DNA from: Basidiobolus meristosporus CBS 931.73
Lineage: Eukaryota; Fungi; Basidiobolomycota
Direction: 5' to 3'
Length of the DNA stretch: 64,000 nucleotides
Assembly: GCA_002104905.1 (NCBI GenBank)
Contig: MCFE01000037.1
Location: forward strand, 140,378 to 204,377
Below the pieces are notes generated by a model, which saw only the letters and a program-made list of their open reading frames with translations, was not told the DNA's origin and did not search any database. The position numbers and the translations under genes were made by a program. Each line of letters starts with the position of its first letter. The first letter of the stretch is position 1. Below, in pieces: positions 29,307-55,108 of the stretch.

Positions 29307-30764
29307 TTCATGCTTCGCGCATTTCATGTAACATACCCAATAAAAGTTTACACTGTTAGTGTACGTACTTGAACAAAACATTTTTGAATATCAGGATTAG
29401 AATTCGGTAGTTTAAGTAGTGTATATGGAAGGGTCATTTGCAATCTCATTTTCAACTCTGCGCTTCATCGATGTATGATTGCATGGACTCTGTATCAATA
29501 ATGAAATTGGTGACATTTACGTCTGATGAGAATATCGTGAAGAAGGTAGAGCTTGGTTTGTATCTGCGTTTGGGATTATCAGCGGGAAACTTTATATATG
29601 CAGTCTTAACGGAAGGTGATATTACCTTTACTCCTAATTACTTGTATATCATGAATACACTCATGACCTATACCCTTGTTAGTTAACATCGTAGGATTAT
29701 TGGTTTCCTGGAGCTATAAAAGAAGAGTAATAAGAGATCATCAACTACATACATACACCTCCGTAGTACTCTGCATTCAGTTCCCAATATAACATATAAA
29801 ATCAGAATGTGTACCTTATTTCTACTAACCAAAGGACTTTCAATTTATTTACAGCTGATGGAGCACACAGATCATTGCAATTAGCTAATTCATCATCTAT
29901 ATCATTCATACATTAGATGTCTCGACCTGTCAAATTACCAAGCTCTTGAATATTCTCAAAGGATCTAGTTAGTAAGACACTTCCTAATTTTTGGATTATT
30001 TACCAAAACATTTGGGCTTTCCCAAGCCTGTGACACTACTTCATGGTACTTTCCCCAAAAATTCTTATGTTTTCCAACTAAAAAGTTCTACCAAATTGTC
30101 CCTATAAAACAAATCAGTGAGTAAAGTGACACATAATCCGCAATTTTCCCAATTTTCCAAGTCAATAGACGACGCTTCATACCATACATAATACAAATAG
30201 ATTTAAGACTTAGAAAAGGGTTGGCCATAGTTAAACCAGATCCTTTTCAGTTAGAGCACTTCCCCATTCATAAAAACCTATACATAGTGCAAGGATTATC
30301 CCATCTCAGTTTTCTCAATTCCCAAGAAGTAAGAAATCAAGTGAATTTGGGTTTTCCAAACTATTGCACCAACATTTAAAAGTCTAACATGGCTGGGAAA
30401 ACCCTCAATAGGCAGAGCTGGCCATTCGAACTTCGATCAATGTTTCTGTGCACTTGGTTATTGTCTTCAGTTGATCAATCAAATCGAACGTATCATGGCC
30501 CAGTGCGTTAATACGCATCCGAGATTAACCAGCATACCTCCTATTGAGCCATATACCAGCAATTTCCAATCAACCATAGCCACCCGGAAATAGCTATCAG
30601 TAATGTCATTCAATAAGTTACTATTGCGGCATAAACCTGGCTCTGTGCTACGTTCAAATGAACGCGCGTATAATTTACCAGGTAAAGTTCGAACCACTAC
30701 TAATAAACGAAATTAAGTAGAATGGGGTTTATTAAATTGCGAAATGCCAAAATTTACAAAGGGC

Positions 30765-31656
30765 TTAACGACGAGCAATGGTAGCAGTAATATAGCCAGA
30801 TGGATCACTGATGGGTTGGAAGATATTCATGTCCTTGCCTTCGTTGGGGAGGTTGAAGGGCTTCAAGTTGACGCTGAGGTAGTGCTTGTTGGGAAGAGCA
30901 TAGCTGATCTCGCTGACATCCACGTTCTGTCCCAACACCTTCTCACCCATTTGGTACATGGTAGCTTGCACCGAGGCTGAGTCATCGGTGGCGAAGGTGC
31001 TGAGGGTGATCTCACGAACGCTGCTGGCGATCTCGTCGAATGGAATCTCCTCGATCTTGGACTTCTCAAGGTTGTAGGTCCACTTGGCATCCACACTGGT
31101 GGAGAAGATGCGGTCGGTGGCGTCCTGGAGAGTGGTGTTCTCACAACGGTGGAAGTTGGTGAATGATGAGCCGGTGGACTTCAACACAAGGAGGTCCTTG
31201 AGGCGGGACTCGATGGACACCTTTCCATCACGAGAGACAACCAGCTCAACACGTCTGGTCTCATCACCGTCACGGAGGAAGGAGTGCGGGTGGAGCTGGC
31301 CATCGATCTCAACGCGGGTCCAGCGGTGCTGGATGAGCTTGATGTAGACATCATCGACATGAGAGTATCTGTTGATGAAGTGTTGACCAATCTCGTAGCC
31401 GAAACGCTCGATGGTCTGGACATTCTCGGACTTCTTGGCGAGGACATAGAGGGTGTTCTTGACAGTGTCAGTGGGGACAACGACAGAGTTGTCAGCCTCG
31501 GTGTAGGAGGTCTCGAACTTGCCATCGAGGAGGACTTGAGCGGTGAGCTCGACAACATCGTGCCAGTTCTTAGTGTGGCGGATGATCCTTGGTGATGCGA
31601 ACCTTGGTCTTGCCATAGGCTTGCTTCTTCAAATAGGCACTGGAAGTGTTGGACAT
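30765..31656 (-). CDS. uox: Urate oxidase type A, copy A6 (1-nt insertion at ~31586)
   Basis: 892 nt, otherwise near-identical to A5/A7. Confidence 0.85.
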
Positions 31657-32177
31657 TTCGTTACTAGATATTTGGCAGATACTTTGAACTCCTGATAGAT
31701 ACGAGTGACAATGACTTCTCTTATATAACTGGTAGTGCCACTTGTTGATCTTAATTTACCATTGGAGTAGGTAGAATCTTTTTAGAAATATATGTGATGG
31801 CCTCGGCCAGCCCACTACGATGATGCACAAAGTGTGTGTGTGAGATGCGGTCACAGCCCTCATTTGTAGATATTCTCAGGAATAGAGATCAACTACACAT
31901 CCTTCATTACCAGCGATGGGAGATGATTTGTGTGACAGCAACTGCGTTGCAACTAGATCCGCAAGTCCCATCTAATCTACTATGTTCTCGTGACTAGTGG
32001 CCGTGTGCAATTGCCAATGCCTAGATCCAGAAATTAGAATAACACCGAGATTGCAGTGAAATGAACATGGTGCATATCCGAGGATGTATGTGGTCGGGAA
32101 CTTTCTCAGATTGTATATATATGCCGCGCTGAAGAAATGGAAAGGCCAAGCAATATCATTGGTAAGTGATTTGAAGT

Positions 32178-33068
32178 ATGTCTGCCTCTGTTCAATTAAA
32201 ACGTCAAGCCTATGGTAAAGCCAAGGTCAGAGTCACCAAGGCCATCCGCCACACCGCCCAATACAACGACATTGTCGAGCTCACTTGCCAAGTCCTTCTC
32301 GAGGGTGACTTCGAAGAGGCTTACACCAAGGCTGACAACAGCATGGTTGTCCCCACTGACACTGTCAAGAACACCTGCTACGTCATTGCCAAGAAGTCCG
32401 ACCATGTTCAGACCATCGAACGTTATGCCTACGAGCTCGGCAAGCACTTCGTTGACAAGTACTCCCATGTCACCCATGCTCATGTGCACATTGTCAAGTA
32501 CCGCTGGGCCAGAATCAATGTCAACGGCGAGCCCCACCCTCACTCCTTCTACCGTGACGGCAGCGAGACCAGAGAGACCTGGGTCACGGTCAGTGCGAAC
32601 GATGTCAGCATCAAGTCTGGCTTGGAAGGCCTTCTTGTGTTAAAGACCACCGGCTCGTCCTTCACCAACTTCCATCACTGCGAGAACACCACTCTCCAAG
32701 ACGCTGATGACCGTATCTTCTCCACCACTGTCAAGGCCCACTACAACATCGACACCTCGATTGGAGTCGAGAACATTCCATTCGACCGCATCTTTGAAGG
32801 AGTCCGCAAGACCACCCTGGATGTGTTCGCCCACGATGACTCTGCCTCAGTCCAGGCCACCATGTACCGCATGGCTGAGCTGATCTTGAAGCGCTTCCCA
32901 GAAGTCCGTGATGTGTACTACGCCCTCCCCAACAGCCATCACTTCACCACCAACCTTGCCCCCTTCAACCTCCCTAACGCTGGCCAAGAGATGACCATTT
33001 TCTCCCCTGTTACTGACTTCTCTGGATACATCACCGCAACCATTGGTCGTCGTGGCAACAAATTCTAA
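32178..33068 (+). CDS. uox: Urate oxidase type B, copy B6
   Basis: Intact 296 aa. Confidence 0.96.
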   Translation: MSASVQLKRQAYGKAKVRVTKAIRHTAQYNDIVELTCQVLLEGDFEEAYTKADNSMVVPTDTVKNTCYVIAKKSDHVQTIERYAYELGKHFVDKYSHVTHAHVHIVKYRWARINVNGEPHPHSFYRDGSETRETWVTVSANDVSIKSGLEGLLVLKTTGSSFTNFHHCENTTLQDADDRIFSTTVKAHYNIDTSIGVENIPFDRIFEGVRKTTLDVFAHDDSASVQATMYRMAELILKRFPEVRDVYYALPNSHHFTTNLAPFNLPNAGQEMTIFSPVTDFSGYITATIGRRGNKF

Positions 33069-33928
33069 TTCATTCCATTAACGTATGTAAAACATCCATT
33101 AAATATCAACTACCATCAATCCTTATTGCATTTTTGAAACTTAATAGAGTAGTGTGAAAACCTAGTTGAATCAACTACAATTTTATATAAGTGCAGGAAT
33201 AATAACGGTGGACTTCTGGCAACCCTAAACCTTTCCTGGGTTGATATCTGGTGAACCTTCCATACAAATATCAAATATAGAAATGGTTCAGAGGTGATGT
33301 TTAGCTACAGAGTACGGGTTGATAATCTGGGAGATATATAATTTAAATAAGGGCAATTTTTGTAAGCCAAATAAAATGATCGACCTCCCGGTTCGTCATT
33401 AAATGGGAACTGGAAAAATGAGTTCGTCTCATAATTCAAACTACTGAAGTTTTGTGACCACATTTTTCGCCACCACTACCGTCAAATAAAGTTACAGGAA
33501 TTGGTGGTGAACTATGTTGAGATGTAAATTGGGTTTATCTTTTAGCCACAGTGGGCCATATGCTGTTACTAATACCGGTTGTATACACACCCAGATACTT
33601 CTGTACTCATTAATAATAAAATATTGTATCCGACTGTATTAGAAATACTCCAAAGTTTGGGTAGTATTTCATCCCCATTGAAAGATATTAATGAAAAACG
33701 GGAAGCACTGATCAATTTCAAATACAAACAGAGAAATCAGGCATTATAGCAGCTCGCTTTGACTGCTCACATGGCCATTGTCTGCATCAAACACACAGCG
33801 CCCATGGTGTTCCATGTCGAAGGATGTTCAATGCGTTCGAAATTGAGTTGATATATTATTTTAATAGTGTCAGATATTACATGATGTGCAATGATACGAA
33901 TGGGGTAAACGCCCAAAATACCAAAACC

Positions 33929-34819
33929 TTAACGACGAGCAATGGTAGCAGTGATATAGCCAGATGGATCACTGATGGGTTGGAAGATGTTCATGTCCTT
34001 GCCTTCGTTGGGGAGGTTGAAGGGCTTCAAGTTGACGCTGAGGTAGTGCTTGTTGGGAAGAGCATAGCTGATCTCGCTGACATCCACGTTCTGTCCCAAC
34101 ACCTTCTCACCCATTTGGTACATGGTGGCTTGCACCGAGGCTGAGTCATCGGTGGCGAAGGTGCTGAGGGTGATCTCACGAACGCTGCTGGCGATCTCGT
34201 CGAATGGAATCTCCTCGATCTTGGACTTCTCAAGGTTGTAGGTCCACTTGGCATCCACACTGGTGGAGAAGATGCGGTCGGTGGCATCCTGGAGAGTGGT
34301 GTTCTCACAACGGTGGAAGTTGGTGAATGATGAGCCGGTGGACTTCAACACAAGGAGATCCTTGAGGCGGGACTCGATGGACACCTTTCCATCACGAGAG
34401 ACAACCAGCTCAACACGTCTGGTCTCATCACCGTCACGGAGGAAGGAGTGCGGGTGGAGCTGGCCATCGATCTCAACGCGGGTCCAGCGGTGCTGGATGA
34501 GCTTGATGTAGACGTCATCGACATGAGAGTATCTGTTGATGAAGTGTTGGCCAATCTCGTAGCCGAAACGCTCGATGGTCTGGACATTCTCGGACTTCTT
34601 GGCGAGGACATAGAGGGTGTTCTTGACAGTGTCAGTGGGGACAACGACAGAGTTGTCAGCCTCGGTGTAGGAGGTCTCGAACTTGCCATCGAGGAGAACT
34701 TGAGCGGTGAGCTCGACAACATCATGCCAGTTCTTGGTGTGGCGGATGACCTTGGTGATGCGAACCTTGGTCTTGCCATAGGCTTGCTTCTTCAAGTAGG
34801 CACCGGAAGTGTTGGACAT
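33929..34819 (-). CDS. uox: Urate oxidase type A, copy A7
   Basis: Intact 296 aa. Confidence 0.96.
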   Translation of the reverse strand: MSNTSGAYLKKQAYGKTKVRITKVIRHTKNWHDVVELTAQVLLDGKFETSYTEADNSVVVPTDTVKNTLYVLAKKSENVQTIERFGYEIGQHFINRYSHVDDVYIKLIQHRWTRVEIDGQLHPHSFLRDGDETRRVELVVSRDGKVSIESRLKDLLVLKSTGSSFTNFHRCENTTLQDATDRIFSTSVDAKWTYNLEKSKIEEIPFDEIASSVREITLSTFATDDSASVQATMYQMGEKVLGQNVDVSEISYALPNKHYLSVNLKPFNLPNEGKDMNIFQPISDPSGYITATIARR

Positions 34820-34949
34820 TTTGCAGATAGGTATTTGACTTATACTTCATGTGTGGTCCTCTCTCAGTTAAATAGTAAATATTCGGCACGTGCATCCACC
34901 ACCAATTCGGAGTTGTATGAATGGGAAATATGTAGGTTTCAGAGTGGCC

Positions 34950-34963
34950 TCGGCCTTTGCCGA
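34950..34963. promoter_or_regulatory. TCGG-N6-CCGA, a perfect match to the Zn2Cys6 UaY/Ppr1-type site, in the A7/B7 divergent spacer
   Basis: TCGGCCTTTGCCGA; the TCGGCC half is positionally conserved in other spacers. Confidence 0.45.
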
Positions 34964-35300
34964 CTGCTGTCCTACCAAGATCAAGGAGTAAGTGGTGCTT
35001 CCCTCAAACGTAGATAATCTCAGGGTTGAGATCTACTTCTCGTCCTTAGTTACAGCCGTAGATGAATTTGTGTGACACAAATTGCTGTACTGCGAAGTCA
35101 TACTGGTCAAATCTTATCTATCTTGCACCAGAACCAAGCATCAGTCAGTCCCACCGTAGGCCTAGAATCCGGATATAATTTTGGCAGCCGGATTCAGTAG
35201 CAGAATTATTAGTGGCGAAAGAAATTTCCATGATTTTAGGAGTATATATACCGGCATTATTCAGCAGTATAGACCACACAATCATTTCAAAAGAATAGAA

Positions 35301-36192
35301 ATGTCTGGAGCTGTTGAGTTGAAGCGTCAAGCCTATGGTAAAGCCAAGGTCAGAGTCACCAAGGCCATTCGCCACACCGCCCAGTACAACGACATCGTTG
35401 AGCTCACTTGCCAAGTCCTTCTCGAGGGTGACTTCGAAGAGGCTTACACCAAGGCTGACAACAGCATGGTTGTCCCCACTGACACTGTCAAGAACACCTG
35501 CTACGTCATTGCCAAGAAGTCCGACCATGTTCAGACCATCGAGCGTTATGCTTACGAGCTCGGCAAGCACTTCGTTGACAAGTACACCCATGTCACCCAT
35601 GCTCATGTGCACATTGTCAAGTACCGCTGGGCCAGAATCAATGTCAACGGCGAGCCCCACCCTCACTCCTTCTACCGTGACGGCAGCGAGACCAGAGAGA
35701 CCTGGGTCACAGTCAGTGCGAACGATGTCAGCATCAAGTCTGGCTTGGAAGGCCTTCTTGTGTTGAAGACCACCGGTTCGTCCTTCACCAACTTCCATCA
35801 CTGCGAGAACACCACTCTCCAAGACGCTGATGACCGTATCTTCTCCACCACTGTCAAGGCCCACTACAACATCGACACCTCGATTGGAGTCGAGAACATT
35901 CCATTCGACCGCATCTTCGACGGAGTCCGCAAGACCACCCTTGGATGTGTTCGCTCACGATGACTCTGCCTCAGTCCAGGCCACCATGTACCGCATGGCT
36001 GAGTTGATCTTGAAGCGCTTCCCAGAAGTCCGTGATGTGTACTACGCCCTCCCCAACAGCCATCACTTCACCACCAACCTTGCCCCCTTCAGCCTCCCTA
36101 ACGCTGGCCAAGAGATGACCATTTTCTCCCCAGTCACCGACTTCTCTGGATACATTACTGCTACCATTGGCCGTTGTAACACCAAATTCTAA
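35301..36192 (+). CDS. uox: Urate oxidase type B, copy B7 (1-nt insertion at ~35941; ends NTKF)
   Basis: 892 nt; two overlapping ORFs both match type B. Confidence 0.85.
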
Positions 36193-36712
36193 TCCATACT
36201 ACCATTTCTCACACAGCACATTAAATAAATTCATCACTTATGACATCCGTTCATGTATTCTAGGCTTCCTAAATATGTGGTACACCATCCGAACTTAAGG
36301 TTCGAGTAGTACTTCGGAAGTCGCCACTGCAGATCTGTTACCCAAGCATACTCATTTACCCTATATCTGTATTATTCCAACGCAAATGAATGATGTATCA
36401 CCGCTTTCAATGATAATATGAAATCGTACATAGCAACTGCGTTATTCTTAGTTAAACCCTAATGTATATATTGAAATACACGTTGTTTACAGAGTACAGA
36501 AATGTGATCATCAACTTTATGTTAGTGGGTTTTAAAGTGCGCTTTGAGTGTTCAATGTTAATTGTCTGCATCGCATCAAAATTGATCATGAGATCAACAG
36601 TCCAAGGATGTTCAATGCGTTCGAAATTGAGTTGATATATTATTTTAATAATGTCAGATATTACATGATGTCCAATGATACGGATAGGGTAAACGCCCAA
36701 AATACCAAAACC

Positions 36713-37600
36713 TTAACGACGGGCAATGGTGGCAGTGATATAGCCAGATGGATCACTGATGGGTTGGAAGATGTTCATGTCCTTGCCTTCGTTGGGAAGG
36801 TTGAAGGGCTTCAAGTTGACGCTGAGGTAGTGCTTGTTGGGAAGAGCATAGCTGATCTCGCTGACATCCACGTTCTGTCCCAACACCTTCTCACCCATTT
36901 GGTACATGGTGGCTTGCACCGAGGCTGAGTCATCGGTGGCGAAGGTGCTGAGGGTGATCTCACGAACGCTGCTGGCGATCTCGTCGAATGGAATCTCCTC
37001 GATCTTGGACTTCTCAAGGTTGTAGGTCCACTTGGCATCCACACTGGTGGAGAAGATGCGGTCAGTGGCATCCTGGAGAGTGGTGTTCTCACAACGGTGG
37101 AAGTTGGTGAATGAGGAGCCGGTGGACTTCAACACAAGGAGGTCCTTGAGGCGGGACTCGATGGACACCTTTCCATCACGAGAGACAACCAGCTCAACAC
37201 GTCTGGTCTCATCACCGTCACGGAGGAAGGAGTGCGGGTGGAGCTGGCCATCGATCTCAACGCGGGTCCAGCGGTGCTGGATGAGCTTGATGTAGACATC
37301 ATCGACATGAGAGTATCTGTTGATGAAGTGTTGACCAATCTCGTAACCGAAACGCTCGATGGTCTGGACATTCTCGGACTTCTTGGCGAGGACATAGAGG
37401 GTGTTCTTGACAGTGTCGGTGGGGACAACGACAGAGTTGTCAGCCTCGGTGTAGGAGGTCTCGAACTTGCCATCGAGGAGGACTTGAGCGGTGAGCTCGA
37501 CAACATCGTGCCAGTTCTTAGTGTGGCGGATGACCTTGGTGATGCGAACCTTGGTCTTGCCATAGGCTTGTTTCTTCAAGTAAGCAACGGAATTAGGCAT
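36713..37600 (-). CDS. uox: Urate oxidase type A, copy A8
   Basis: Intact 295 aa. Confidence 0.96.
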   Translation of the reverse strand: MPNSVAYLKKQAYGKTKVRITKVIRHTKNWHDVVELTAQVLLDGKFETSYTEADNSVVVPTDTVKNTLYVLAKKSENVQTIERFGYEIGQHFINRYSHVDDVYIKLIQHRWTRVEIDGQLHPHSFLRDGDETRRVELVVSRDGKVSIESRLKDLLVLKSTGSSFTNFHRCENTTLQDATDRIFSTSVDAKWTYNLEKSKIEEIPFDEIASSVREITLSTFATDDSASVQATMYQMGEKVLGQNVDVSEISYALPNKHYLSVNLKPFNLPNEGKDMNIFQPISDPSGYITATIARR

Positions 37601-38106
37601 AACTTTATGATTACAAGAGTTCAGTCAATGTGGTATGGTAGGCATCCAGTTCCTATTTATAGATATTGACCGCTTCCCTCATAACGGTAATGGTCGTCTT
37701 CCGGATTCCTCAATAACAACCTGAGTCTCGGCCTTTCTTATCTCCAGTAAATTCAGGAACCGGGGCCTGATGATGGTAACACATACACTTTATTCTGTTG
37801 CACCATTCAAGTTTGAAAGTCGGTCTGAGCTTCAGTCTGCGTAACCGATTATTTGAAAATGTATAAAAACTTCATCTCGGAGGTTTTCTGTACCACAATC
37901 CAGTTGGACATGCCGATCCTAAATAGTCAAATCTCATCTTGATGAATCTCTTGGTATCATCAAATATTCTGTGCAAAGCCTGGATTCTTGAGCAATCATA
38001 ATTGCGTGTCTATTGCAAAGCTAATGTAATAATGCTGGTCTTAATAGTATAAAAGCGCTCTATCAACCAACATTATAGGTCAGAAACCTTGAGTGGAAGT
38101 ACAAGA

Positions 38107-38997
38107 ATGTCAGGTTCAGTAGAGTTGAAGCGTCAAGCCTATGGTAAAGCCAAGGTCAGAGTGACCAAGGCCATCCGCCACACCGCCCAGTACAACGACA
38201 TCGTTGAGCTCACTTGCCAAGTCCTTCTCGAGGGTGACTTCGAAGAGGCTTACACCAAGGCTGACAACAGCATGGTTGTCCCCACTGACACTGTCAAGAA
38301 CACCTGCTACGTCATTGCCAAGAAGTCCGACCATGTTCAGACCATCGAACGTTATGCCTACGAGCTCGGCAAGCACTTCGTTGACAAGTACACCCATGTC
38401 ACCCATGCTCATGTGCACATTGTCAAGTACCGCTGGGCCAGAATCAATGTCAACGGCGAGCCCCACCCTCACTCCTTCTACCGTGACGGCAGCGAGACCA
38501 GAGAGACCTGGGTCACAGTCAGTGCGAACGATGTCAGCATCAAGTCTGGCTTGGAAGGCCTTCTTGTGTTGAAGACCACCGGTTCGTCCTTCACCAACTT
38601 CCATCACTGCGAGAACACCACTCTCCAAGACGCTGATGACCGTATCTTCTCCACCACTGTCAAGGCCCACTACAACATCGACACCTCGATTGGAGTCGAG
38701 AACATTCCATTCGACCGCATCTTCGACGGAGTCCGCAAGACCACCCTTGATGTGTTCGCTCACGATGACTCTGCCTCAGTCCAGGCCACCATGTACCGCA
38801 TGGCTGAGTTGATCTTGAAGCGCTTCCCAGAAGTCCGTGATGTGTACTACGCACTCCCCAACAGCCATCACTTCACCACCAACCTTGCCCCCTTCAACCT
38901 CCCTAACGCTGGCCAAGAGATGACCATTTTCTCCCCAGTCACCGACTTCTCTGGATACATTACTGCTACCATTGGCCGTCGTAGGAACAAATTCTAG
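38107..38997 (+). CDS. uox: Urate oxidase type B, copy B8
   Basis: Intact 296 aa from ATG 38107. Confidence 0.96.
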   Translation: MSGSVELKRQAYGKAKVRVTKAIRHTAQYNDIVELTCQVLLEGDFEEAYTKADNSMVVPTDTVKNTCYVIAKKSDHVQTIERYAYELGKHFVDKYTHVTHAHVHIVKYRWARINVNGEPHPHSFYRDGSETRETWVTVSANDVSIKSGLEGLLVLKTTGSSFTNFHHCENTTLQDADDRIFSTTVKAHYNIDTSIGVENIPFDRIFDGVRKTTLDVFAHDDSASVQATMYRMAELILKRFPEVRDVYYALPNSHHFTTNLAPFNLPNAGQEMTIFSPVTDFSGYITATIGRRRNKF

Positions 38998-39487
38998 TTC
39001 CATCATTGCCTCTGTAAATTTATTTATTAAATATTCACATACTTGACGTGACAGCCAATCTTTTTGCATTAATGTGATGATTATTTTTTAGTTTTCGGGT
39101 ATTCATTAAACTGTTGGTAGTCCTGGGTTTACCCATATAGTGAAGAACCGGTCTACTGAAATGTGAATATAGCTTGCTACGTTACACAAGTTTACATGTA
39201 TTATAAGCTATAGCACTTCATATTGCCGTACACCAATGTTAACTTTTTAACTGCTCGGCACTTCTAGATGCTACCGCATTTGAAATCTATAGAGTGTTTT
39301 CCTCAAATCCTTGGAAGTAATGCTGAAAATTTGGATTTTCGGTTTTCCAGGGATGTAAAATCTGGATTGTCCATTTTCCAATACATTCGTGTCAATCACA
39401 ATTCAAACAAACCTTGTGGCAAAGTAGATTTACGACTTCGTTCGAATGCTTGCTAATCGTTAATGTTTATGTTGGATTCTGTCAATT

Positions 39488-39663
39488 TACCGACAGACGA
39501 TAGTAGCAGCGATGTGGCCGGAAGGATCACTGATGGGCCGGAAGTGCTCACGTCCCTGAGCTTGCCATCAAGGAGGACTTGAGCAGTGAGCTCGACAACA
39601 TCATGCCAGTTCTTGGTGTGGCGGATGACCTTAGTGATGCGAACCTTGGTCTTACCATAGGCA
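39488..39663 (-). pseudogene. Type-A uricase remnant (A9) with ~700 bp internal deletion
   Basis: The 5' segment (YGKTKVRITKVIRHTKNWHDVVELTAQVLLDGK) is joined at ~39557 directly to a decayed 3' end. Confidence 0.85.
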
Positions 39664-40210
39664 TTTGCAGGAGTTGGACAAGTTTGTATAGCTGATGCGG
39701 ATCAGAAATTGAAACCCGAGAAGCACATCAACATTGACAATTGGGCTCTTATATTTTTGCCGACAATACTGACAACTATCAATGTACCCAAGTCTTAGAA
39801 ATTCAGTGAGCCTGGACTATCTTCATAGACGAATAACGTTGTGGGTAAGGCAACAATTTTGTTCACAACTCCTAATACTGTAGATCCTATATATCTTAAA
39901 TACCGTAAAGCTATATGTATGCTATCATAAGGTGGCCTACTTAGACATAGGACCTAGGGTAGCTTTCAGAATCTAATTGCTTTCATACTGACAATTGACC
40001 AGATCTAATCTAATTGTCGACATGTCAGGGTGTAGGAATAATTTTGCAAAATCTGTAATTCTTGGGAATTAAGATTCAAGATATAGCATGAGCGTATATC
40101 AGGTTTGCGCTTGCCTATCAGTGGCGAGTCTCATGCCCTAAGGTTTGGAAATTAATGTCCTACAAGTGGCGGTTCAATTATTATCTCCCTTTCTGAAGCC
40201 TTGAAATTGA

Positions 40211-41064
40211 ATGTCTGATTCGGTTGGTAAAGCCAAGGTCATCCGCCACACTGCCCAATACAACGACGTTGTCGAGCTCACTTGCCAGGTGCTTCTCGAG
40301 GGCGACTTCGAAGAGGCTTACACCAAGGCTGACAACAGCATGGTTGTCCCCACTGACACTGTCAAGAACACCTGCTACGTCATTGCCAAGAAGTCCGACC
40401 ATGTTCAGACCATCGAGCGTTATGCTTACGAGCTTGGCAAGCACTTCGTTGACAAGTACTCTCATGTCACCCATGCTCATGTGCACATTGTCAAGTACCG
40501 CTGGACCAGAATTAACATCAATGGCGAGCTTCACCCTCACTCCTTCTACCGTGACGGCAGTGAGACCAGAGAGACCTGGGTCACAGTCAGTGCGAACGAT
40601 GTCAGCATCAAGTCTGGCTTGGAAGGCCTTCTTGTGTTGAAGACCACCGGCTCGTCCTTCACCAGCTGCCATCACTGTGAGAACACCACTCTCCAAGACG
40701 CTGATGGCCGTATCTTCTCCACCACTGTCAAGGCCCATTACAACATCGACACCTCGATTGGAGTCGAGAACATTCCCTTCGACCGCATCTTTGAAGGAGT
40801 CCGCAAGACCACCCTGGATGTGTTCGCTCACGATGACTCTGCCTCAGTCCAGGCCACCATGTACCGCATGGCTGAGTTGATCTTGAAGCGTTTCCCAGAA
40901 GTCTGTGATGTGTACTACGCACTCCCCAACAGCCATCACTTCACCACCAACCTTGCCCCTTCAACCTCCCTAACGCTGGCCAAGAGATGGCCATTTTCTC
41001 CACTGTAACTGATTTCTCTAGCTATATCACTGCTACCATTGTTCGTCGTGGTAACAAGTTTCAA
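40211..41064 (+). pseudogene. Decaying type-B uricase (B9)
   Basis: N-terminal deletions, substitutions (FTSCHH, DADGR), a frameshift near 40958 and a lost stop. Confidence 0.85.
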
Positions 41065-41165
41065 TTTTCATCAGTGCCTGCCTTCTCTGATTAGATAACC
41101 GTCACAATTGGCCGCCACTACCCCGTATTCGGTCATCATAAAATACGACTGGTTCGCCTCACATT

Positions 41166-41192
41166 TTAGGGTTAGGGTAACCCTAACCCTAA
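41166..41192. repeat. Head-to-head interstitial telomeric repeats (TTAGGG)2-TAA-(CCCTAA)2
   Basis: ttagggttagggtaaccctaaccctaa. Confidence 0.85.
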
Positions 41193-41229
41193 GCATAAAA
41201 TTTGAGGTTGAGCAAAAAACTTCCATGAC

Positions 41230-41476
41230 TTATAGTTTGTTTCCCCCACGACCAATGATGGGGGTGAAGTAACCCAAGATGTCAGTAATGGGTGAGGAGA
41301 TGACTATTTAGGAATGGTGTCTATTGGGGAGAGCATAGTACACATCATGGACTTCGGGGAAGTACAAGAACAACTCAGCCAGGCGGTACATGGTGGCCTG
41401 GACTGAGGCAGAGTCATCATGAGCGAACACATCCAAGGTGGTCTTGCAGACACCTTCAAAGATACAGTGGAATAGG
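41230..41476 (-). pseudogene. 3' fragment of a type-B uricase (B10), inverted relative to cluster 2; ends GGNKL*
   Basis: LDVFAHDDSASVQATMY...YYALPN with stops and deletions. Confidence 0.85.
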
Positions 41477-41500
41477 ATGAGTAATCCCTGATACCAGAGC

Positions 41501-41704
41501 TGACACGATGTTATTGAGCTCACCGCTCAAGTCCTCCTCGATGGCAAGTTCGAGACTTCCTACACCGAGGCTGACACCTCTGTCGTTGTCCCCACTGACA
41601 CTGTCAAGAACACCCTCTATGTCCTCGCCCAGAAGGCCGAGAATGTCCAGACCATCGAGCGTTTCGGCTACGAGATTGGTCAACACTTCATCAACAGATA
41701 CTCT
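41501..41704 (+). pseudogene. Internal fragment of a type-A uricase (A10), inverted relative to cluster 2
   Basis: HDVIELTAQVLLDGKFETSYTEAD...VPTDTVKNT...HFINRYS. Confidence 0.88.
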
Positions 41705-42586
41705 GACCGAGCAGAGTCCATTCGTAGAGATCAGTGATTTACTATGGTTTGTTATTAGCTTCTTTTTTGTATATTGACACTTGAGCTAATAGTTTGATGA
41801 TTCATTAACATTCATTAATTGTTGCGCTACCAACGTTTCAAGTATTCTCTTCTGGTATTTGGTGATTTTGGTGGCCAGTATCCCAGCATCTTGTGGTAAT
41901 CACCGAGCTTTTACCCGCAGAATTTATTGGGTAATACCCTGAGATTGTTTCAATTATGTAGGTAGTTCTTGGATGCATTTGGGGTTTCTAGAACCATGAA
42001 CAGGTGCTTTGACTGACACGGATCGGTTCTAGTTAAACACCGATTCGGGTGCCCGATATGGAGAAATCAGGTAAGAGATGTCTTTCATCTGAATATTCAT
42101 CACAACATGCACTCGTTCGATCAGATTCTGTTTAATTTCCGCGTGGTAGGCCATGGCTTTTATCTTGGTGTATATCCTTTTTGATTACCTGCTCTTTCTT
42201 AAGCACACCACCCAGCTTGCCTCATACGGACTGTTGGCGATACTTTGGAAGCAATGGAGGGGAAGTGGCGGGGAGGGCTGATGCAAGTATATTCATTATT
42301 GTAAATGTTAAACCAAACCAATGATTAGGCTTGGCAAAGAAATAACCGGTTATTACGAGTTCTATCTGGCCCATTCTTGATCTATTATCACGCAGGGTTA
42401 GTTAAAGTGTATGGTTTGACCAGTTGCATCTATATACACATTCCTATATTTGGTTAAAGTGGGCTGATCTAACCAGAGAACTTCGCAGGGTGAGGGAAAA
42501 TGTGTGCTTTGACATAAATACTCTCTCACTCCACCTTCGGCTTCTGGCGATATTTATATCTTCATCAAAATTCAACCCTCCCCAAC

Positions 42587-43150
42587 ATGTATCCTCATTC
42601 TATGAACACAGCAGATCGCTCAAATATGATGGAATTGGTATTTCATTCGCTTGGGGTTTATCCTTCGATGGCCGATACTTTTCCGCCCAGGTATGCCAGT
42701 TCGGCCTCCGTTATGCCGCACAGAATGCTCTTCGAGAATAGTCTATTATTTTCACATTTCTTAGAGCTAGGTGAACAACTACCAACCTCGAATCATCGTA
42801 TTTCGGGCTATTACGATTCTCTAGTCCCACAATCCACAAGCCCGCAAGTGTCAACAGTTGGCTCCAACACGGCTTCAGAGAATTCCTCACGTAAAAACAG
42901 TCAAGGGAAGGTCAAAACTCTTCAGAGAGATCGTCCATATGCCTGCACACATTGCCTAAGGACATTCACAAGAAAGTATGATTTAGAACGTCATGAAAGA
43001 TTACATACTGGTGATCGGCCTTACCAGTGTGCATTTTGTCACAATTCGTATGCCAGAGTGGACGCCAGGCAACGCCACTACAAATATGACGGCACATGCT
43101 CTTTTCTGTATACTATTACGAAAAGCAGTGGTATTGAAATGCCGTTTTAA
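42587..43150 (+). CDS. C2H2 zinc-finger transcription factor (two fingers)
   Basis: CTHCLRTFTRKYDLERHERLH-TGDRPY-CAFCHNSYARVDARQRH, with a Ser-rich N-terminus. Confidence 0.85.
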   Translation: MYPHSMNTADRSNMMELVFHSLGVYPSMADTFPPRYASSASVMPHRMLFENSLLFSHFLELGEQLPTSNHRISGYYDSLVPQSTSPQVSTVGSNTASENSSRKNSQGKVKTLQRDRPYACTHCLRTFTRKYDLERHERLHTGDRPYQCAFCHNSYARVDARQRHYKYDGTCSFLYTITKSSGIEMPF

Positions 43151-44081
43151 AGTGCATTTCGTTACCAATTCCAATTGTATATACATAGTTCATTTGCTCT
43201 CTATGCTATCATATCTCTCTACCATTGAATCGAATTTCGTAGCGGTTTTTGGCAACACAGCTGATACCCGATCTATTTACTGTAATGCCCTTTATGTGTA
43301 GTAAGATAGTAAATAGTTCAGTGGATCTTGTTGGCGATAAACTTGTTTCAATGTCACATTACAAATAATGACGAAAGCGATTTCCGCCATAGTTGTCTCA
43401 GTGCTCAACATCACCTATATGAAAGGAGAGTTTCGGCCAAAGCATACCTGTTAATGACATTGTGTCAGCTCTAGCTCTCCTTGATCTGAATGATCTGTTA
43501 CAGTAAGCAAATATTCTATAATAATATAGACGCAATCAGTATGTGAGATGTGGAGTACAGAGGCAGTTTATAGTAAGTAACATAAATCAGGTCCTTGGCA
43601 GGAATATGCAATGCACCATGATTTGAAATACATTAGTTGTACATATTAGTGTTGGAAATATCGGATATATGATAAATAGAGAGGTCAAGGTATACCAAAT
43701 TATATAGTTCCCACCAGCTACACTCGCAGGGGTGGAGAAACATGAAAATGGCGCAGTGGTCAAAACATTCTTATCATCTGGACCTTAGGGTAAGGCACCC
43801 TATTTCCTTATATAATACGCGTGATTTCCATCATATGATTTTATGATGATAGCTCAACTGATCGGCTAAAAGTGTGGCAAGGCAAAGGCTGGCTGGTTGA
43901 TTTTCTTTGGAGCATGCCGATAAAAAAAGATGAAATGTTTAACTGGGTGGAAGTCGATATTATCCTCTTAGGATATATTATTGCTCTAAGCCGCCACAAA
44001 GTCTGACTTCTCTTGCTTGATGTATACAGGGCTTGTTCGTGAACAAAAGGGGCTGCATGGTCTTCTGTATTTCTGGAAGAA

Positions 44082-44918
44082 TCATTGCTCACCGTGCCGC
44101 CGAAGAGAAAGCTTCATTCCTTGGTTGGAAAACCAATCTGACAAAGGTGTAACGTCTTTCTCCTTTGATTAGTAAACTGGTTGGATATGTTACCCCAAGA
44201 TATTGGGCTCTTACCGGCCATTCCTGGAAAACTGCGCGGTGGATACACCGTAAAGGGTTCACTATAAACGTGAGTGAGCATGTAGTTATGTCCTTCTTTC
44301 CAAGTCCTGGGAATGGAAAAGATGCGTTAGGAGCAATATCGAATTACAACTTCTCACTTTTCTACCTCATGATATCCCACAGACTAAACCGTAGTCTATA
44401 TTTTCCTTCCACCCTTACCGAGAGGTCAGGAAACAGAAAAAAAACGCCAGGGTTGCCGTCCATATGCCTGAGTTGATACGAGGAGGAGACGGTGCAGCCT
44501 ATTAAATTTCGGACGTTAACAGGCCCGCCAAGAGATATAATAGAAGAACCTTGCCGCTCTTGACTAGACGTTGGTATGGACGCCGGATTGACTACTACGT
44601 TACAATCATGCTGGAAATCAGCTGACCAAAGGTCCGCATGTACAACAAAATTTGCGATTTCGACCGTACTTTGGAGAAGTCAGTTAGTGCAAGGGAGTCA
44701 GACGGCATTATTGAAAGGTGTGCTACTTTTCAGTGGTCGTATTGTTGGTCTTGAGTTCCAGTATCGGGAGTGGCCCAATTAGTCTACGGTCCTTGTCACC
44801 AAATCCACACATTCTCGCCCGTGTAGGCTGTTGAAGGATTTCCAAAGAGTATCTGATGGGTTGAAAATGGTTAATGAGTTGAGCACCAATGTAATCCACG
44901 CCAGCACTACCTGGTCAT
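44082..44918 (-). CDS. Velvet-domain protein, ~200 aa (exons 44918-44911, 44852-44727, 44668-44366, 44306-44215, 44155-44082); absent from the ORF track
   Basis: Spliced translation YSLEILQQPTRARMCGFGDKDRR...RNLIG...FFLFPDLSVRVEGKYRLRFSL...SEPFTVY..FPGM..TPLSDWFSNQGMKL. Four GT-AG introns keep the frame. Confidence 0.9.
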
Positions 44919-47900
44919 CGTTGTTGTAAGAATACGGTGAGGAAAAACAAAAACACGTGAATGCAAAAAGGATAAAAGCAAAAAGGATAAGGGAGTGACT
45001 TTTCCTTTCTTATAATAAATTTACTGGGCAGAAGTGAAGTTGAAGTTACCATATCAGGTGGGACGTACCAAGTTCTATATGGCATGCAGAGCGGTGCCGT
45101 TATAAAGTAGGATCCGATATAGTTTGGGGGTTGTTGGAATACCAAGTTATCTGTCATACCTTTATGCCACCCCATTTACCTTCACTCTTAACCAACTGGT
45201 TTCTTGCTGCTAATTGGTTAGCAGCTGTTGATAATCTAGATTGAAGATGGACAAATGTATTATCAGGAATTATGGACTTTGAACCTGATTGGCCGAACGA
45301 GTTCGAGGACGCATCCGACTGCTTCAATCTTGAGCGATCATAGTCTGGTTGCCTATTTCTGCATATACCATCTGCTCTTACGATATAGCGAATGTCTAAA
45401 GGAGGCTTTACATAGGATTTATATTTAGGCTAATGAGTCAGCAGCGTTAATTGCTTCCGCATCAATTAAACAACCCGCTCTACCTCAAGATTAGTTACCA
45501 TCCTTTTCCCTCTACTGAATCCTGCTCAATTAACCTGAACATGACTGCTTTGATTTGGCAATGTGATACAATCGAACCATAAACTAAGCTTTGTTCTGGT
45601 TGTTGTTTCTGAACTCGATCTGTGGGATTTCTTGTCTATCCTCACATAGTACCCGTGAAGATTGCGATAATTAGTGGCGCACCTTATCTCATGTTTCATG
45701 TATCGTTAATCCTCCATGTATTTGTCCAAATGTAATCTTATTTGGATGACTCGCCCCCAGGGTAGGTGATAGAAAGATGGAAGCGAGAATAAAATGGTCA
45801 ACACAGTTCATTCCCTATTTTGGCCATTAGTGTATGATACATGCTACGTACGTCCTAGGACCAGAACAATTGTGAAGTCTAAATGTGGCAATACATAATT
45901 AAACGAGCTATATGAAGTTCTCTGTGTGATTCCTTTTTATTCTCTGATGCATTATCCTCTCCTTATTGGAATGAATATTAGTGATTAGGCCCCAGTACAC
46001 AGTTGCTGAGCCCGTATCACATTGATTCACATGATACTATCATGTTACGAACACGTTACCGCATATAGACTCCATATTGGAGGGGGAGTAATGGTGTTTG
46101 TAACACTAACGTTTACAGAAAGCGAAAATCAAGCTACAAACTCTTTCGAGGATAGCACTTTGGGAAGCCTAGAGATCAGCGATCATGCCAGATGAGCCGA
46201 TTTGCTCGTCAATTTAATCGAATTTTATTGGGGAGAATTGGTTGCAAGTATTCCTGTAGTCAAATTTATTCATATTCTCAATTTTATACTATTAGCCGAG
46301 AATACCTTTTCAACAATTCTCTTTCCTTATGGAAGTGTCAGAGTGTTGAGAGTATACTCACATTACATGACGCTAAACAAAATAATATATGAATATATGA
46401 CAAACTTAGACATTGGTGCTGGTGTAAAATCTAATGACGAGCTTATATTTGAAAAGTATACTTCGATTCAGGTATATTACTTATTACCTCATTGATTCGA
46501 GGAGAGTTCAAAGTTATTTGGTGAGCTAGGATTATGATATCATATCCACTAGCCAGTTGACAGTGAATTAGCATGATTGCCATACTTTATAATAGGTCTG
46601 TTTTCATCAAGAGAGATTGACCAAGTTGGAGAATTTACAACTTGAAGCTTGTAAGATTATGCCTGGTAAGGATTTAGTACAGTATCACTTCTTATCTAGT
46701 ATCAAATCTATTCTATGCCTTATTTTCATGTGATAGCTGTCTCACCTTAGTATCACCTGATTTTAGGATTTATTGATTTCCCGGAAGTGATGGCAATTTT
46801 CCAGGAGAGGGAGGTCCTTCTTTCCATTGTTTGCCTGGCGCTTATTTCAATACAAATAAAAAAGCCAATCTATAGATTTAAAGTATCCTTGGTAAATATC
46901 CTTGATCTGGAGTTAGTGGGAGATATATAAAGTGATAAACCACCCAACGCGCTGTCCCAGCAAATATTGCAGTATGACCTAGTAAGCGCAACGAAGACCA
47001 AGTCCCAATATTGTATGCCTTATTACTAGTATGTACCTTGTCCAGAGCACAGTCCGGGTATTGAAAGAAGCTAATGGTACCTTATTAGACAGAGTCATTG
47101 TTGGCTACATCAATTGTTATGCTGTACCCTACCAAGGTGGATTACTGCGCAACAGTTGTCACCAAAAGAATCTGTTGGGGTAGATGACAGTATTCGAAAT
47201 TTGCAGGAAAGTAACATGTACTGATTTTTTCTTCAGCCAGGCTAAAAATGGCACTCCATACCTTTTTTGGATTTTCTGTGGATGAATTGCTGTCTTGTCG
47301 ATTGCTTTGCCAGGTGTTGAGCCATGCCTACCACATCAAATTTCAACCACATTGTTTTCATTGAACACATGGTTACAGAAAGCTATTGCACATACATAGG
47401 CTAAGACCACATCTCAGAATACTATTGTTTCCAAGTACATGTTTTGTTTGATAGTAAATGTATATTTACTAACTTGGACCTGGTCTAGTCCATGTTATCA
47501 GTTATAGCTTAAGCCATATGCATTGAGCGGCTCTGGGTCGGTAATGCTTTGACGATTTTTCTTTTAATTCCTTTTGACACAAATCAGCCACACGGTATGG
47601 ATAAATTTATACCAGAAGAAACAAAAAGCTGCATCAATTCCTATCCAAGTCAAATACATATATACACTCAACAATGCACCGAAAGTATCATTGGTTGATT
47701 CCTCTTCCCATTTTATTCAAGTACGAGACATGTGTCCACGTACCAATACATTATTCAATCAGTGCTTATCACTTACAAACAGATGCTACCTTAGGAAGTA
47801 ACGAAGACTAGAAATTGAGTAAATGGCTTACACAACATACAACCACTCGTCCCACTGGCTTTCGTTTGAGAGAGGCAATGGACTTGAGACTCGGACTTCA

Positions 47901-48249
47901 AGATAAATGACGTAGATTTCCTACATGTGGGAACAAAGTATCTCTTGTCAGTCGCAGCCACCTGAACTTTCCATTCTCTCCAAGAGATCCATGGCTGGAA
48001 CCTTGGAGTAATGCGTTTTTATTGATGGGAAGGCTTACAACCCGTCTATCACTAGCTTTTGAACATCGATTAAGATCCCTATTGGATATGACTAAGTATA
48101 ATCCAACTTTTTTAGAGGCTTAGTTACTTAACTCGGACAGTAACCACGATGGAATATGGGTGATAATCCACCCGAGGTATGGAAGCACGTTCTGCAAGCT
48201 TTCGAGTTGATTTTTGTGCTGAGGTAAGGCATTCCAAATCAATGTTCAA

Positions 48250-48263
48250 GGGTTAGGGTTAGG
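48250..48263 (+). repeat. Short interstitial telomere-like repeat GGGTTAGGGTTAGG
   Basis: About two TTAGGG units in the same polarity as the telomere. Confidence 0.5.
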
Positions 48264-48987
48264 CTCAAGGTGGGTATTATTATATTCATATCAAGGAGAG
48301 GAAAGGTGCGGGGTTCGAATCGTGGAGAAATGAAGCCACTGGTTGATTGTTTCCATCGATTCGAAATCGAATTGTCTGACGCGCAACATACGATAATCAG
48401 TTTCCGAATCGAAGGGTAATAGTAAATGATCAATATAAGCCAAACAGAAAGGAATGCGCTGATAAGAGCTTCAATGAATAATTTGTGACATTTGAAAGAG
48501 ATGCTGACTACACGTGCATACCGTATCTTTTGTAGGATCGCCTACAGTACACCCTACAGAATGTCAAACTCGAATAGTATCCTAGGGCTACGTAGTTGAA
48601 CAAAATGTGTACCTAGCCGAATCTGGAAATAAGTAAAGATCTACGCAGTGATTTCCCGGTTAGTTCCAAATTTAGGATCAAAAAGTGCTCAGAAAATCAG
48701 CTAGCTTGAGGTCCCAGAAAGTCAATTGAAATCAATTTTGATTCCCAGAAATTCAACGAAAACAGCCATCTTCGGCAGTCCTGAAATAACAGTCAAGTCT
48801 TTAATTGTAAACATCGAATTGACGATGTGATCCAACCAGTACAAATTAAAACGCGCTCATGGAAAAGTGGCATTTAATTTTTTTCATTGCAACACGTGAT
48901 TCTTGTACTTGTTACTGTACCGTTCCAATTTTTTCTTCGATAAACATGGTGCAATAATCAAGGGGACTGATATTCAAATGCAAACGT

Positions 48988-50379
48988 CTAATTGAAAGAA
49001 GCAATAACAGAGACCGAGTCGATATCCAGGATGCATTTTTTAGGGATTTGGACATTGCTCCAGCTGGGTTGCTTCTCCGACTGCTGAAAGCACTCGTAGA
49101 GTGGTCCTCCAATTTGTTCACCCTCCTTCAAAGGTGTACGGGTTTGCACTTCAACATGCAAATCATAATCTTTGCCATCACTGCTCTTGCCGTTATAGTA
49201 AAACAAGGTTGAGCCCGAACTCCAGGCAGCCTCATCCCACCAATACCCTTGATTTTGGTAAGCAGCCAAGAAGTCGTCAATGTATATGTCTACTGAGTCC
49301 CTAGTGCAGGCGCAGTTGCCGGTATTGTTGGCAAGTTTAAATTTAGAAAGCTCCGTGTCGTCACGGTGTACAGGAGAAAGAATATGCGACTTGGTCTTTG
49401 TGGTCTTCGTAACTTGAGGCCGGCGGTTTGTCACAGGGGCATCATACTCCAGATTAGATGAGCCTTTGCAGTAAGCATCGGTGGTGCCACAGTAGCCATA
49501 ATTGGAGCAGCAGTAACCTGGTTGGCACTGGTGCATCACATCTCCGAACCAGCCACAACGTGTATTGGTTTGATTTGCAACAACGATGTCTATTCCCAAT
49601 TTATCGGCATCGTAGGGATACCACTGCCATTGTATGGGCTTGTTGTTGTATCCATGATAGCCAGCTGGGCCGTTGATGGACATCCAAAGTGCCGTTTGAT
49701 CTTCTGTTAAACCTGCACCCCATGTGCCGTCGGGTCCAGGGTACGTGTACGTTATAGAGCCACCTAATGCGGGGAACCACTGGTTACCACCTTCATATCT
49801 GTAAACTTGTTTACTCCAAACGCCAACTCGGACGCCATTGCTAAGTCCCTGAGGATTTTCAAGGAACTGGTAGAAGTAGCCAAGACCATTTTTCAAGTTG
49901 TCGTTGATAACACGCAATTTCCCAAATTGCATCCATTTGTCATCAATACGTAGCTGGGCTGTGTAGATCAAATAATCACCGTCCTCTTCGTAATCGATTT
50001 GGAAGCCGTAATCCACTCCATCAAGCCATGGATAGAAATACTGCATATGGGACCCAGTGCCCTCGTGGCCAAAGCGACTAGTCACACATTCCTTACATGC
50101 TTCCAGTACGGTTGCTTTTCCATTGTTGTTGTCCCAGAGAGAGAAGAGGAATACGCGTTTGTTGGCCCATGTCTGCATCCCCATATATCCGTTATTCCAG
50201 CCGATAGCTGACCAGTAGGTTTGGTTAGGGCTGAATTCAGGAACAGATCGGACGTCTGTCCGAAAGGAGACGAACTTCTTCCCATTATCAGGGAGACTGG
50301 GGAAGTTGTGCATTGCCTGGGAGAGCACCTTCGCTGCGAACAGCGAGGTAAGCGAGAGGAAAAGGGTTGGAAGCTTCAT
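48988..50379 (-). CDS. Secreted modular protein: signal peptide + DUF3472-like domain + hevein/CBM18 chitin-binding module + unknown C-terminal domain
   Basis: Hydrophobic N-terminus. GYMGMQ..KRVFLFSLW, FGHEGTG..YPW and YQFLEN recall DUF3472. RCG...CQPGYCCSNYGYCGTTDAYC is a hevein motif. Intronless. Confidence 0.78.
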   Translation of the reverse strand: MKLPTLFLSLTSLFAAKVLSQAMHNFPSLPDNGKKFVSFRTDVRSVPEFSPNQTYWSAIGWNNGYMGMQTWANKRVFLFSLWDNNNGKATVLEACKECVTSRFGHEGTGSHMQYFYPWLDGVDYGFQIDYEEDGDYLIYTAQLRIDDKWMQFGKLRVINDNLKNGLGYFYQFLENPQGLSNGVRVGVWSKQVYRYEGGNQWFPALGGSITYTYPGPDGTWGAGLTEDQTALWMSINGPAGYHGYNNKPIQWQWYPYDADKLGIDIVVANQTNTRCGWFGDVMHQCQPGYCCSNYGYCGTTDAYCKGSSNLEYDAPVTNRRPQVTKTTKTKSHILSPVHRDDTELSKFKLANNTGNCACTRDSVDIYIDDFLAAYQNQGYWWDEAAWSSGSTLFYYNGKSSDGKDYDLHVEVQTRTPLKEGEQIGGPLYECFQQSEKQPSWSNVQIPKKCILDIDSVSVIASFN

Positions 50380-52252
50380 GATATTTTCACGAAAGCACGG
50401 AGTTCAATCATGCTCTTAAAGTAGTTCCATTTTTCCAAGATAGAAATCACGTTTCGTCACCAACCGCGAAAACAAGCTGAGGATTTGCCCTAATTGAGTA
50501 GTCTGATAGCGTTCTACTATTGTGGCAATTCGGGTAGGGTAGCTGAATGGATGAATCCTAAATGGAAGTCATCGGATAAACACATTGTCGATGGTGTTTC
50601 AATGCGGTTTCTAGAAATCACCCAAAGTAGTGGCATTTTGCATACCGGTCTTGAGAAATGAGGGTCCAAGGAAGTGTGGTCTCTCAATAATACCACTCTC
50701 AACACGGTGGAAGTGACTCTTACGGTGCATACTTGAACGGATTCGAGTATAGCAAGTGAGCCTAAAGTATTATATTACCTCGAAACTACGATGATGTAGG
50801 CTATATAAAGAAGTTTGCTCACAGGATTCCTTTTCAGAAGTTGCGGAGCGAAACTTGTAAGAATCTATGCCGATACCGCCGACAGGGAGGGGCAAATTGA
50901 TACCCTTCAATATTTACCCAGGAGAATAAACACGGCTGATATAGTGCCCTGCCGAAGATTTAATGACCATGTCTACTACGCAGAGGCGTCCATCAAATTG
51001 TAATGTGAATACTTTCCCAGAATGCCACTACGTTTAAGCATGTCTATAAACGAACACACTTTGCAGTGGGCTGTATCCAGAATATAATGGTATTAGTTTG
51101 CGCACCAAATATTTCAAATGACTCCCATTTTTGTAACATAGATTAGCCATACCACTAGTAATACTTCAGTTTTCCTTTACGTCACACCTTCATGGATACT
51201 TCTCTAGAACTTTGCGGTTAGGGATCCATTTGCTTGGCTCAACAAATATGCTGCCTTCCAATTAAGATCGTATAACGTGGCCAATAAGTCGCTAGAAAAT
51301 CTCTTGGTCGAAATTTCCATTCAGCGTATAGCATCATGACTCAATAAGGAGCTGAGTATCATGGAAAATCATGCTAAACCCCGTTTTGGGCCAAATTGAT
51401 GGACATCAAGATTTTCCTCATTTGGAATATTGCTTTGTTGGGTGGATGTAGCCGGCATTTGCACACAACAAATCTGTTACGGAGGATTGAAGAGTCATGC
51501 GAACCAGCCACGTTATGCTCGAAGTCCAGTGCATACGTTGAGGATTTACTTATGGGGAATAGCCTCACTAGGCGTTATGGCTTGGGGGACTGGTCGAGAC
51601 ACCAAGGTACACAATTGCGTAGTCTCGACATACTTCACAGCTCCATGGACCTTGAGCTCGGTGTCCAGACTTTGACTGATGGTACCTGCTGTGCTTCAGC
51701 TTTCTGCTTGGCGTGCTCATCTCCAAAAGTAGTTCTTACATATCCTCCCGTGGACGGATAGCTGGAATTTCCATTATCAACGCAATCGCAAGATCAAATC
51801 TAGTGGTTCTGATCACATCGATCACTATCTTGATACCACATTTTAAACTCGGTGAATCAGAGAACTTCCTGATGATACAACAGAGTTCAATTTTGACGAT
51901 GACGCTTTGGTCAACATAATCCACCAAGGCCCTTACACCCCTCTGCGAATATTCATACAAGCCACGCTCATGAATATGCAAATTGGTTATTTTTGATAGC
52001 GGCAGCCTCAGTTTTGCTTTGACTGTATACAAGTTGCAAGCGCCAATCATGTAACTGGGTCTAGGAATATAACACTCAGTCCTATGGTGAGGAAAGTGGA
52101 TTTAAGTGGTTTTTGTCCAATAGTCAGATATAACAGTGGACAAGTTAATGTCATAGAGATGAGAACCACCAGTTGGTGAGGTCTTTATTTTATTAGTTTG
52201 GAATATAGAAGCCAGGTGCTACTTAGACAACTGTGCACTCAAGTATTGAGTG

Positions 52253-54965: not shown

Positions 54966-55108
54966 CAGGGTTAGGGGGGGAGACAGTCACCAACAGGTGA
55001 AATCTTTACTTCAGTTGAAACAAAGAAGCCAGCGCTACTGTTGTAGCTTTGATACAAGAGTGTGTAGCTGAGGGGTATTTGTAGGTAAGTTAATAAGAAG
55101 TGATGATA
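54966..55108 (-). mobile_element. Family-1 3' stub joined to GGGTTAGGGGGGG
   Basis: Carries the AGACAGTCACCAACAGGTGAAATC 3'-end motif. Confidence 0.88.

Follow-up and report, generated by a model that had tools for sequence, protein, structure and literature searches.

A head-to-head telomere-repeat palindrome at the orientation flip of a subtelomeric uricase array in Basidiobolus meristosporus: a possible scar of local breakage or inversion

The window, by which we mean the whole 64-kb stretch of DNA analysed here, is the terminal 64 kb of MCFE01000037.1, a contig of 204,377 bp from Basidiobolus meristosporus CBS 931.73 (assembly GCA_002104905.1; the contig coordinate is the window coordinate plus 140,377). 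It carries two uricase paralogs, A and B, both confirmed by Pfam and organized in two arrays: array 1 (6-14 kb) contains three A(-)B(-) units, and array 2 is built from divergent A(-)/B(+) pairs. The window and the contig are closed by a run of 28 telomere repeats, and therefore the right edge of the window is a chromosome end. No tRNA or Rfam RNA was found in the 38-53 kb interval. The features of the distal part of the window are as follows, with the strand given where one applies.

24251-41061: uricase array 2, six direct repeats of the divergent A(-)/B(+) pair
39487-39662, minus strand: what remains of A(-) in the last direct unit, after a large internal deletion
40211-41061, plus strand: last B(+) uricase copy, B40
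41062-41165: left spacer between B40 and the palindrome, 104 bp, unique
41166-41192: head-to-head palindrome (TTAGGG)2-TAA-(CCCTAA)2 (direct sequence, tract scan and folding)
41193-41230: right spacer leading from the palindrome to the B(-) relic's stop codon, 38 bp, unique
41231-41479, minus strand: B(-) relic with internal deletions, covering the 3′ portion of B and its TAA stop (multiple alignment)
41481-41704, plus strand: A(+) relic, A nucleotides ~82-290
41705-47055: unique gene-bearing DNA
42587-43150, plus strand: C2H2 zinc-finger ORF
about 44082-44918, minus strand: Velvet gene
47056-51878: subtelomeric DUF3472/chitin-binding block, common to paralogous loci
48250-48263, plus strand: short interstitial telomere tract, GGGTTAGGGTTAGG
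48988-50379, minus strand: DUF3472/chitin-binding gene
52252-63832, minus strand: stack of LINE copies, 5′-truncated, with reverse transcriptase ORFs on the minus strand
63833-64000, plus strand: terminal telomere (TTAGGG)28 (telomere-repeat scan)

The units of array 2 are homologous only from one stop codon to the other, through the A gene, the promoter that it shares with B, and the B gene itself. Between units, nearly all of the convergent 3′-3′ spacers (460-1460 bp) are unique sequence; a simple tandem duplication would not be expected to give this, and it does not point to breakage-fusion-bridge cycles either. The last direct unit is decaying: in addition to the deletion in its A gene, B40 has lost 1 nt near its 3′ end, which causes a frameshift and leaves an ORF of 265 amino acids, and the canonical stop position (~41056-41061) is now mutated. 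Beyond the palindrome, the B(-) relic is 83-86% identical to the B copies of the window and is directly abutted, at 41479/41481, by the A(+) relic, which is 94-96% identical to the A copies of array 2. The palindrome thus falls within the 169-bp spacer that separates the facing 3′ ends of two B genes, exactly where the orientation of the uricase units flips, and is the centre of a decayed inverted repeat of unit scale, in which the last A(-)B(+) unit faces an inverted B(-)A(+). A preliminary description of this DNA had placed it ~100 bp past the last A(-)/B(+) pair and ~40 bp before a relic pair in mirror orientation; the measured distances, 104 bp from B40 and 38 bp to the relic, bear this out.

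The 27 bases at 41166-41192 read TTAGGGTTAGGG-TAA-CCCTAACCCTAA, a perfect 13+1+13 palindrome with 13-nt arms around a central A, just as first described. A two-repeat 12-mer with at most one mismatch is expected by chance 0.26 times per 64-kb window. Besides the two arms, at 41166 and 41181, all 12-mer matches are on the plus strand and distal to the palindrome, and CCCTAACCC occurs only once in the 64-kb window, at 41181, as its sole C-strand telomere tract. The single-stranded fold of the region reaches -16 kcal/mol (z = -5.5), which is equalled by none of 200 shuffles. The motif is therefore a genuine head-to-head junction of telomere-type repeats, unique in the window and far beyond chance, ~23 kb from the chromosome tip. 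Its repeats face each other in the way that fits the joining of two DNA ends, each carrying telomere repeats.

A perfect palindrome with strong hairpin potential might also be a functional or mobile motif, such as a putative boundary or terminator, placed between convergent genes and bound by a telomere-repeat-binding Myb protein, or what is left of a small fold-back element. The exact 27-mer does recur in more than 120 environmental eukaryote contigs. However, these matches are mostly the cores of much longer arrays, in GC-rich marine organisms and in another context, and a single head-to-head site is present in the 217,724 bases sampled from this genome, which comprise the window and eight further loci, uricase or subtelomeric, among them all accessible uricase loci. 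The other convergent spacers of array 2 contain no head-to-head site. We consider such a motif very improbable, and a common site or repeat, which had been proposed as something that would speak against a chromosome fusion, is disfavoured by the single copy in the sampled bases. As a separate observation, the outer borders of the environmental (TTAGGG)n(CCCTAA)m arrays often read CAG/GTTAGGG...CCCTAACCAG/ (slashes mark the borders), like intron boundaries, and these arrays may be an intron-borne or introner-like palindromic element.

The locus is found in one assembly only; an exact search with the B40 protein for a second assembly or haplotig of the junction returned MCFE01000037.1 as the sole match. 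A chimeric join of two pieces in a long-read assembly would be compatible with this, but misjoined real telomeres would carry long arrays like the one that ends the contig, not two repeats on either side, and the flanks are unique rather than the mirror image that missed-adapter reads give. An assembly artefact is, in our judgment, extremely unlikely.

The flanks of the palindrome are not mirror images of each other. The local score of the comparison is reached by 745 of 2000 shuffles, and the global score is not significant. The one resemblance is a mirrored stretch of 9 nt adjoining the repeats (CCTCACATT on the left, CCTCAAATT on the right, with a 6-nt offset), which is of marginal significance: the best register has 8 matches out of 12, and 332 of 5000 shuffles are as good. 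We therefore rejected a sister fusion or fold-back with mirror-image flanks, in agreement with the earlier view that the junction is no simple foldback.

This bears on how the array grew. The products of breakage-fusion-bridge cycles are inverted ladders, with mirror flanks of the sister type (PMC2847243). Instead of alternating inverted units, array 2 has six direct A(-)B(+) repeats with a single flip at the distal edge, and both shuffle tests (745/2000; 332/5000) speak against a mirror-image sister fusion point. The palindrome did not build the uricase array. The suggestion that telomere dynamics drove the amplification is thus at odds with the direct repeats, the lack of a palindromic ladder and the unmirrored flanks; the array would have grown by another route, for example unequal exchange.

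Head-to-head telomere repeats are usually taken as proof of chromosome fusion. In a true end-to-end fusion, two chromosome or chromatid ends, eroded or healed just beyond a uricase B gene and carrying about two repeats each, would have been joined head to head; the dicentric would then have broken distal to the join, and the new end would have been healed and later extended by LINEs. Several features agree with such an origin. The repeats run as (TTAGGG)n followed by (CCCTAA)m, two on each side. Such an orientation is classically read as the mark of a fusion, and the one human ITS of the "fusion" type, at 2q13, shares this head-to-head arrangement (PMC7215372). The flip in unit orientation coincides with the junction, which the 3′ ends of uricase B genes face from both sides, and uricase pairs are present on several other contigs. 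In addition, the chromosome end shows repeated end-rebuilding, and the gene-bearing DNA at 41705-47055 has no paralog near any other uricase locus.

Other features are difficult to reconcile with a fusion. Given the near identity of the A relic to the neighbouring array, the other end would have to be a very close copy, yet the 104- and 38-bp spacers are unrelated in sequence. Two independent ends are needed within 38 and 104 bp of a B stop codon. When short telomeres fuse in experiments, one or both tracts are usually deleted, as has been described in human (PMC2847243). Further evidence comes from the DNA distal to the junction and from its paralogs elsewhere in the genome.

The segment nearest to the junction, with the zinc-finger and Velvet genes, has no paralog at any fetched locus, including those near other uricase loci, and could be foreign in origin. 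No terminal repeats or target-site duplications bound the 41.7-47 kb interval. In a comparison with B. ranarum through the zinc-finger gene, the alignment is confined to the zinc-finger domain, and the contig, a short one, shows no collinearity. The following block is of a different kind. Its DUF3472 gene has paralogs in the B. meristosporus CBS 931.73 genome only, and it is found next to uricase genes at two other loci. At locus L009 (MCFE01000121.1) an ABC transporter gene is followed by A(-), B(+), a spacer of ~2.7 kb and then a block homologous to window positions 48264-51878. The same ABC-uricase-DUF3472 segment lies on MCFE01001198.1 (L002) and is 95-99.9% identical to L009:4362-19329; the two are haplotigs or a very recent duplication.

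At L009 and L002 the DUF3472 gene is on the minus strand, and both the order, from uricase pair to DUF3472, and the orientation match the window; neither locus has a telomere motif. The uricases at these loci share 77-79% identity with those of array 2, compared with the 94-96% of the A relic, and on this evidence the linkage between uricase and DUF3472 appears to predate the inverted relic. The apparent youth of the A relic could also be due to gene conversion. Collinearity of the two sides in relatives that lack the motif had been put forward as grounds against a fusion; the two loci show it, but they are paralogs rather than orthologs, within one genome whose subtelomeres exchange, and window positions 41.07-48.25 kb are absent from both. 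No fetched locus retains either immediate flank of 41166-41192.

The polarity of the block points in the same direction. At a further locus, L005, C-strand tracts lie on the side that the 5′ end of the DUF3472 gene faces, and in the window the 5′ end of this gene is likewise directed toward the tip. The segment has thus kept its usual polarity and is not reversed as a fused foreign end would be. These results suggest that most of the DNA beyond the scar is native subtelomere, to which a LINE stack was added later. The preliminary description had called the palindrome an end-to-end fusion scar by which the distal 23 kb was acquired. As regards the scar, the head-to-head junction at the orientation flip stands, whereas the collinear paralogs without the motif and the unreversed DUF3472 polarity weigh against a fusion; acquisition of the distal 23 kb is not supported, given the order at L009 and L002, the polarity of DUF3472 and the LINE stack at 52252-64000. 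Taken together, we regard an end-to-end fusion as unlikely, though still a serious contender. That both flanks are B 3′ ends is equally expected from a fusion of two uricase-bearing ends.

A second telomere tract in the same region provides a useful comparison. Here the window has 11 nt of telomere repeat where paralogs have a variable patch of 30-38 bp, and the flanks of 48250-48263 are collinear in alignments with L003 (both arms), L004, L002 and L009. To judge from these alignments, the tract would be a textbook-like case, in a fungus, of telomeric-repeat insertion at a repaired break, and its position between collinear flanks indicates that telomere-repeat patching of repaired breaks occurs in this subtelomere. 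Insertion of telomeric repeats during double-strand-break repair is a known signature (PMC2246262; PMC7215372). We also considered whether the two tracts might cap a 7.1-kb piece (41178-48263) with inverted telomere seeds, as in a captured linear fragment or a telomere-bearing element; this was ruled out, since L003 and L004 are collinear across 48250-48263.

Toward the tip, telomere repeats occur in yet another setting. From 52252 outward, each LINE copy has a short G-strand telomere tract before it, and the tract leads into the antisense 3′ end of the element. This arrangement suggests that the copies were primed from short G-strand telomere tracts, and the presence of such a tract before every antisense LINE 3′ end points to addition of the outermost ~12 kb onto the end by retrotransposition. 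The stack also contains an inverted repeat at 57044-57789 (353-nt arms, 93% complementary, 40 nt between them) and tandem repeats at 55758-56385 (a 155-bp unit, ~4 copies, 85% matches) and 62667-63236 (a 286-bp unit, 2 copies, 100% matches).

The enzyme of these LINEs might in principle have produced the palindrome. A short G-strand tract at the end would have primed the copying of a telomere-adjacent read-through transcript of uricase B, an RNA ending in UUAGGG repeats, by the reverse transcriptase of the telomere-primed LINEs that build this end. Like every G-strand tract from 52252 outward, each followed by an antisense LINE 3′ end, the tract at 41166 precedes an antisense gene 3′ end, that of the B(-) relic, 38 nt away. 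However, the B(-) relic, the sense-strand A fragment and 5 kb of gene-bearing DNA are not one cDNA; a G overhang does not base-pair with RNA that ends in UUAGGG; and the junction is without LINE sequence, no LINE 3′ end adjoining the palindrome. We consider this route improbable.

The explanation that we tentatively favour is a local one: the palindrome would be a scar left in the subtelomere by a break or inversion junction whose two ends both carried short telomere seeds. We base this on the second tract, 7 kb away, that is patched between collinear flanks, on the existence at L009 and L002 of the same gene order without the motif, on the likely recent derivation of the A relic from array 2, and on the conserved tip polarity of DUF3472. 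The break would have fallen at the centre of the inverted repeat, where only a short spacer separates the convergent uricase B genes. The inverted repeat may itself have made the site fragile; inverted repeats with short spacers are known break sites (PMC7999016; PMC10622511). About two telomere repeats would have been placed on both DNA ends, most likely by telomerase acting at the break, as would have happened at 48250; alternatively, a short fold-back or template switch may have used one arm as the template for the other. The seeded ends would then have been joined head to head. We know of no documented standard pathway in which telomerase seeds both ends of one break that is then rejoined. 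Since the arms match in length and phase, copying or equal short seeding accounts for them better than two telomeres that eroded independently. Head-to-head telomeric stretches have arisen locally at a locus with insertion, inversion and inverted duplications (PMC7215372), and head-to-head orientation alone is therefore not proof of chromosome fusion. The scar now probably has no function beyond that of a site prone to form a hairpin or cruciform with a 13-bp stem, with two pairs of predicted telomere-protein sites.

Comparison with known systems shows partial likenesses to three of them. The junction resembles the human 2q13 fusion-type ITS in having internal head-to-head telomere repeats and, on either side, gene copies of a subtelomeric type that face the junction. 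It differs in that there are two perfect repeats on each side, whereas the 2q13 type has long degenerate arrays; in that the distal block has the order and polarity of paralogs without the motif; and in lying 23 kb from a live telomere. Nothing at 41166 shows that its two sides come from different chromosomes.

Short ITSs at repaired breaks (PMC2246262; PMC7215372) have few exact repeats, unique flanks and small deletions. The tract at 48250-48263 is an example, with flanks that are contiguous in copies without it; 41166-41192 is likewise an exact short internal tract with unique flanks, and these flanks occur at no fetched locus. Typical short ITSs are tracts of a single orientation and the palindrome has two, but head-to-head stretches have been reported with inversion or inverted duplication (PMC7215372).

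Breakage-fusion-bridge and fold-back duplications (PMC10622511; PMC2847243) offer a parallel in the one inverted terminal unit beside direct copies, and this subtelomere has other large palindromes. In contrast to those systems, the flanks of the centre are unmirrored here, the amplification is direct rather than alternating, and the centre consists of telomere repeats instead of a short natural inverted repeat.

The paralog comparison argues that a minimal palindrome of two plus two repeats can mark local repair or inversion in a subtelomere that is constantly rebuilt, with LINE stacking, short telomere patches and large palindromes nearby; this calls for caution in interpreting head-to-head telomere motifs in fungal genomes. 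A grander history can be imagined, in which an ancient fusion of two uricase-bearing ends of an early-diverging fungus was followed by breakage, healing and LINE-mediated rebuilding of the end. We think this distinctly unlikely; if true, it would mean that a telomere crisis reshaped a gene family plausibly important for life on the uric-acid-rich dung of reptiles and amphibians. This Basidiobolus chromosome end is a place where several end-repair processes can be studied together.

The large palindromes are giant inverted duplications around two DUF3472 genes near contig ends (L003:989-17010 and L004:1-16193). Their arms exceed 7 kb and are 83-100% complementary, and the centre (about 7628-8609) is non-palindromic and without telomere repeats. 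They could be real subtelomeric palindromes or artefacts of long-read assembly.

The amplification of the uricase genes is not explained by the palindrome and is still, biologically, the more interesting side of this locus. At L006:7125-10891, ~30 kb inside a 201-kb contig, a single A(-)B(+) uricase pair lies beside a gene of the adenosine/AMP deaminase family, and this may be the ancestral purine-catabolism context of the pair.
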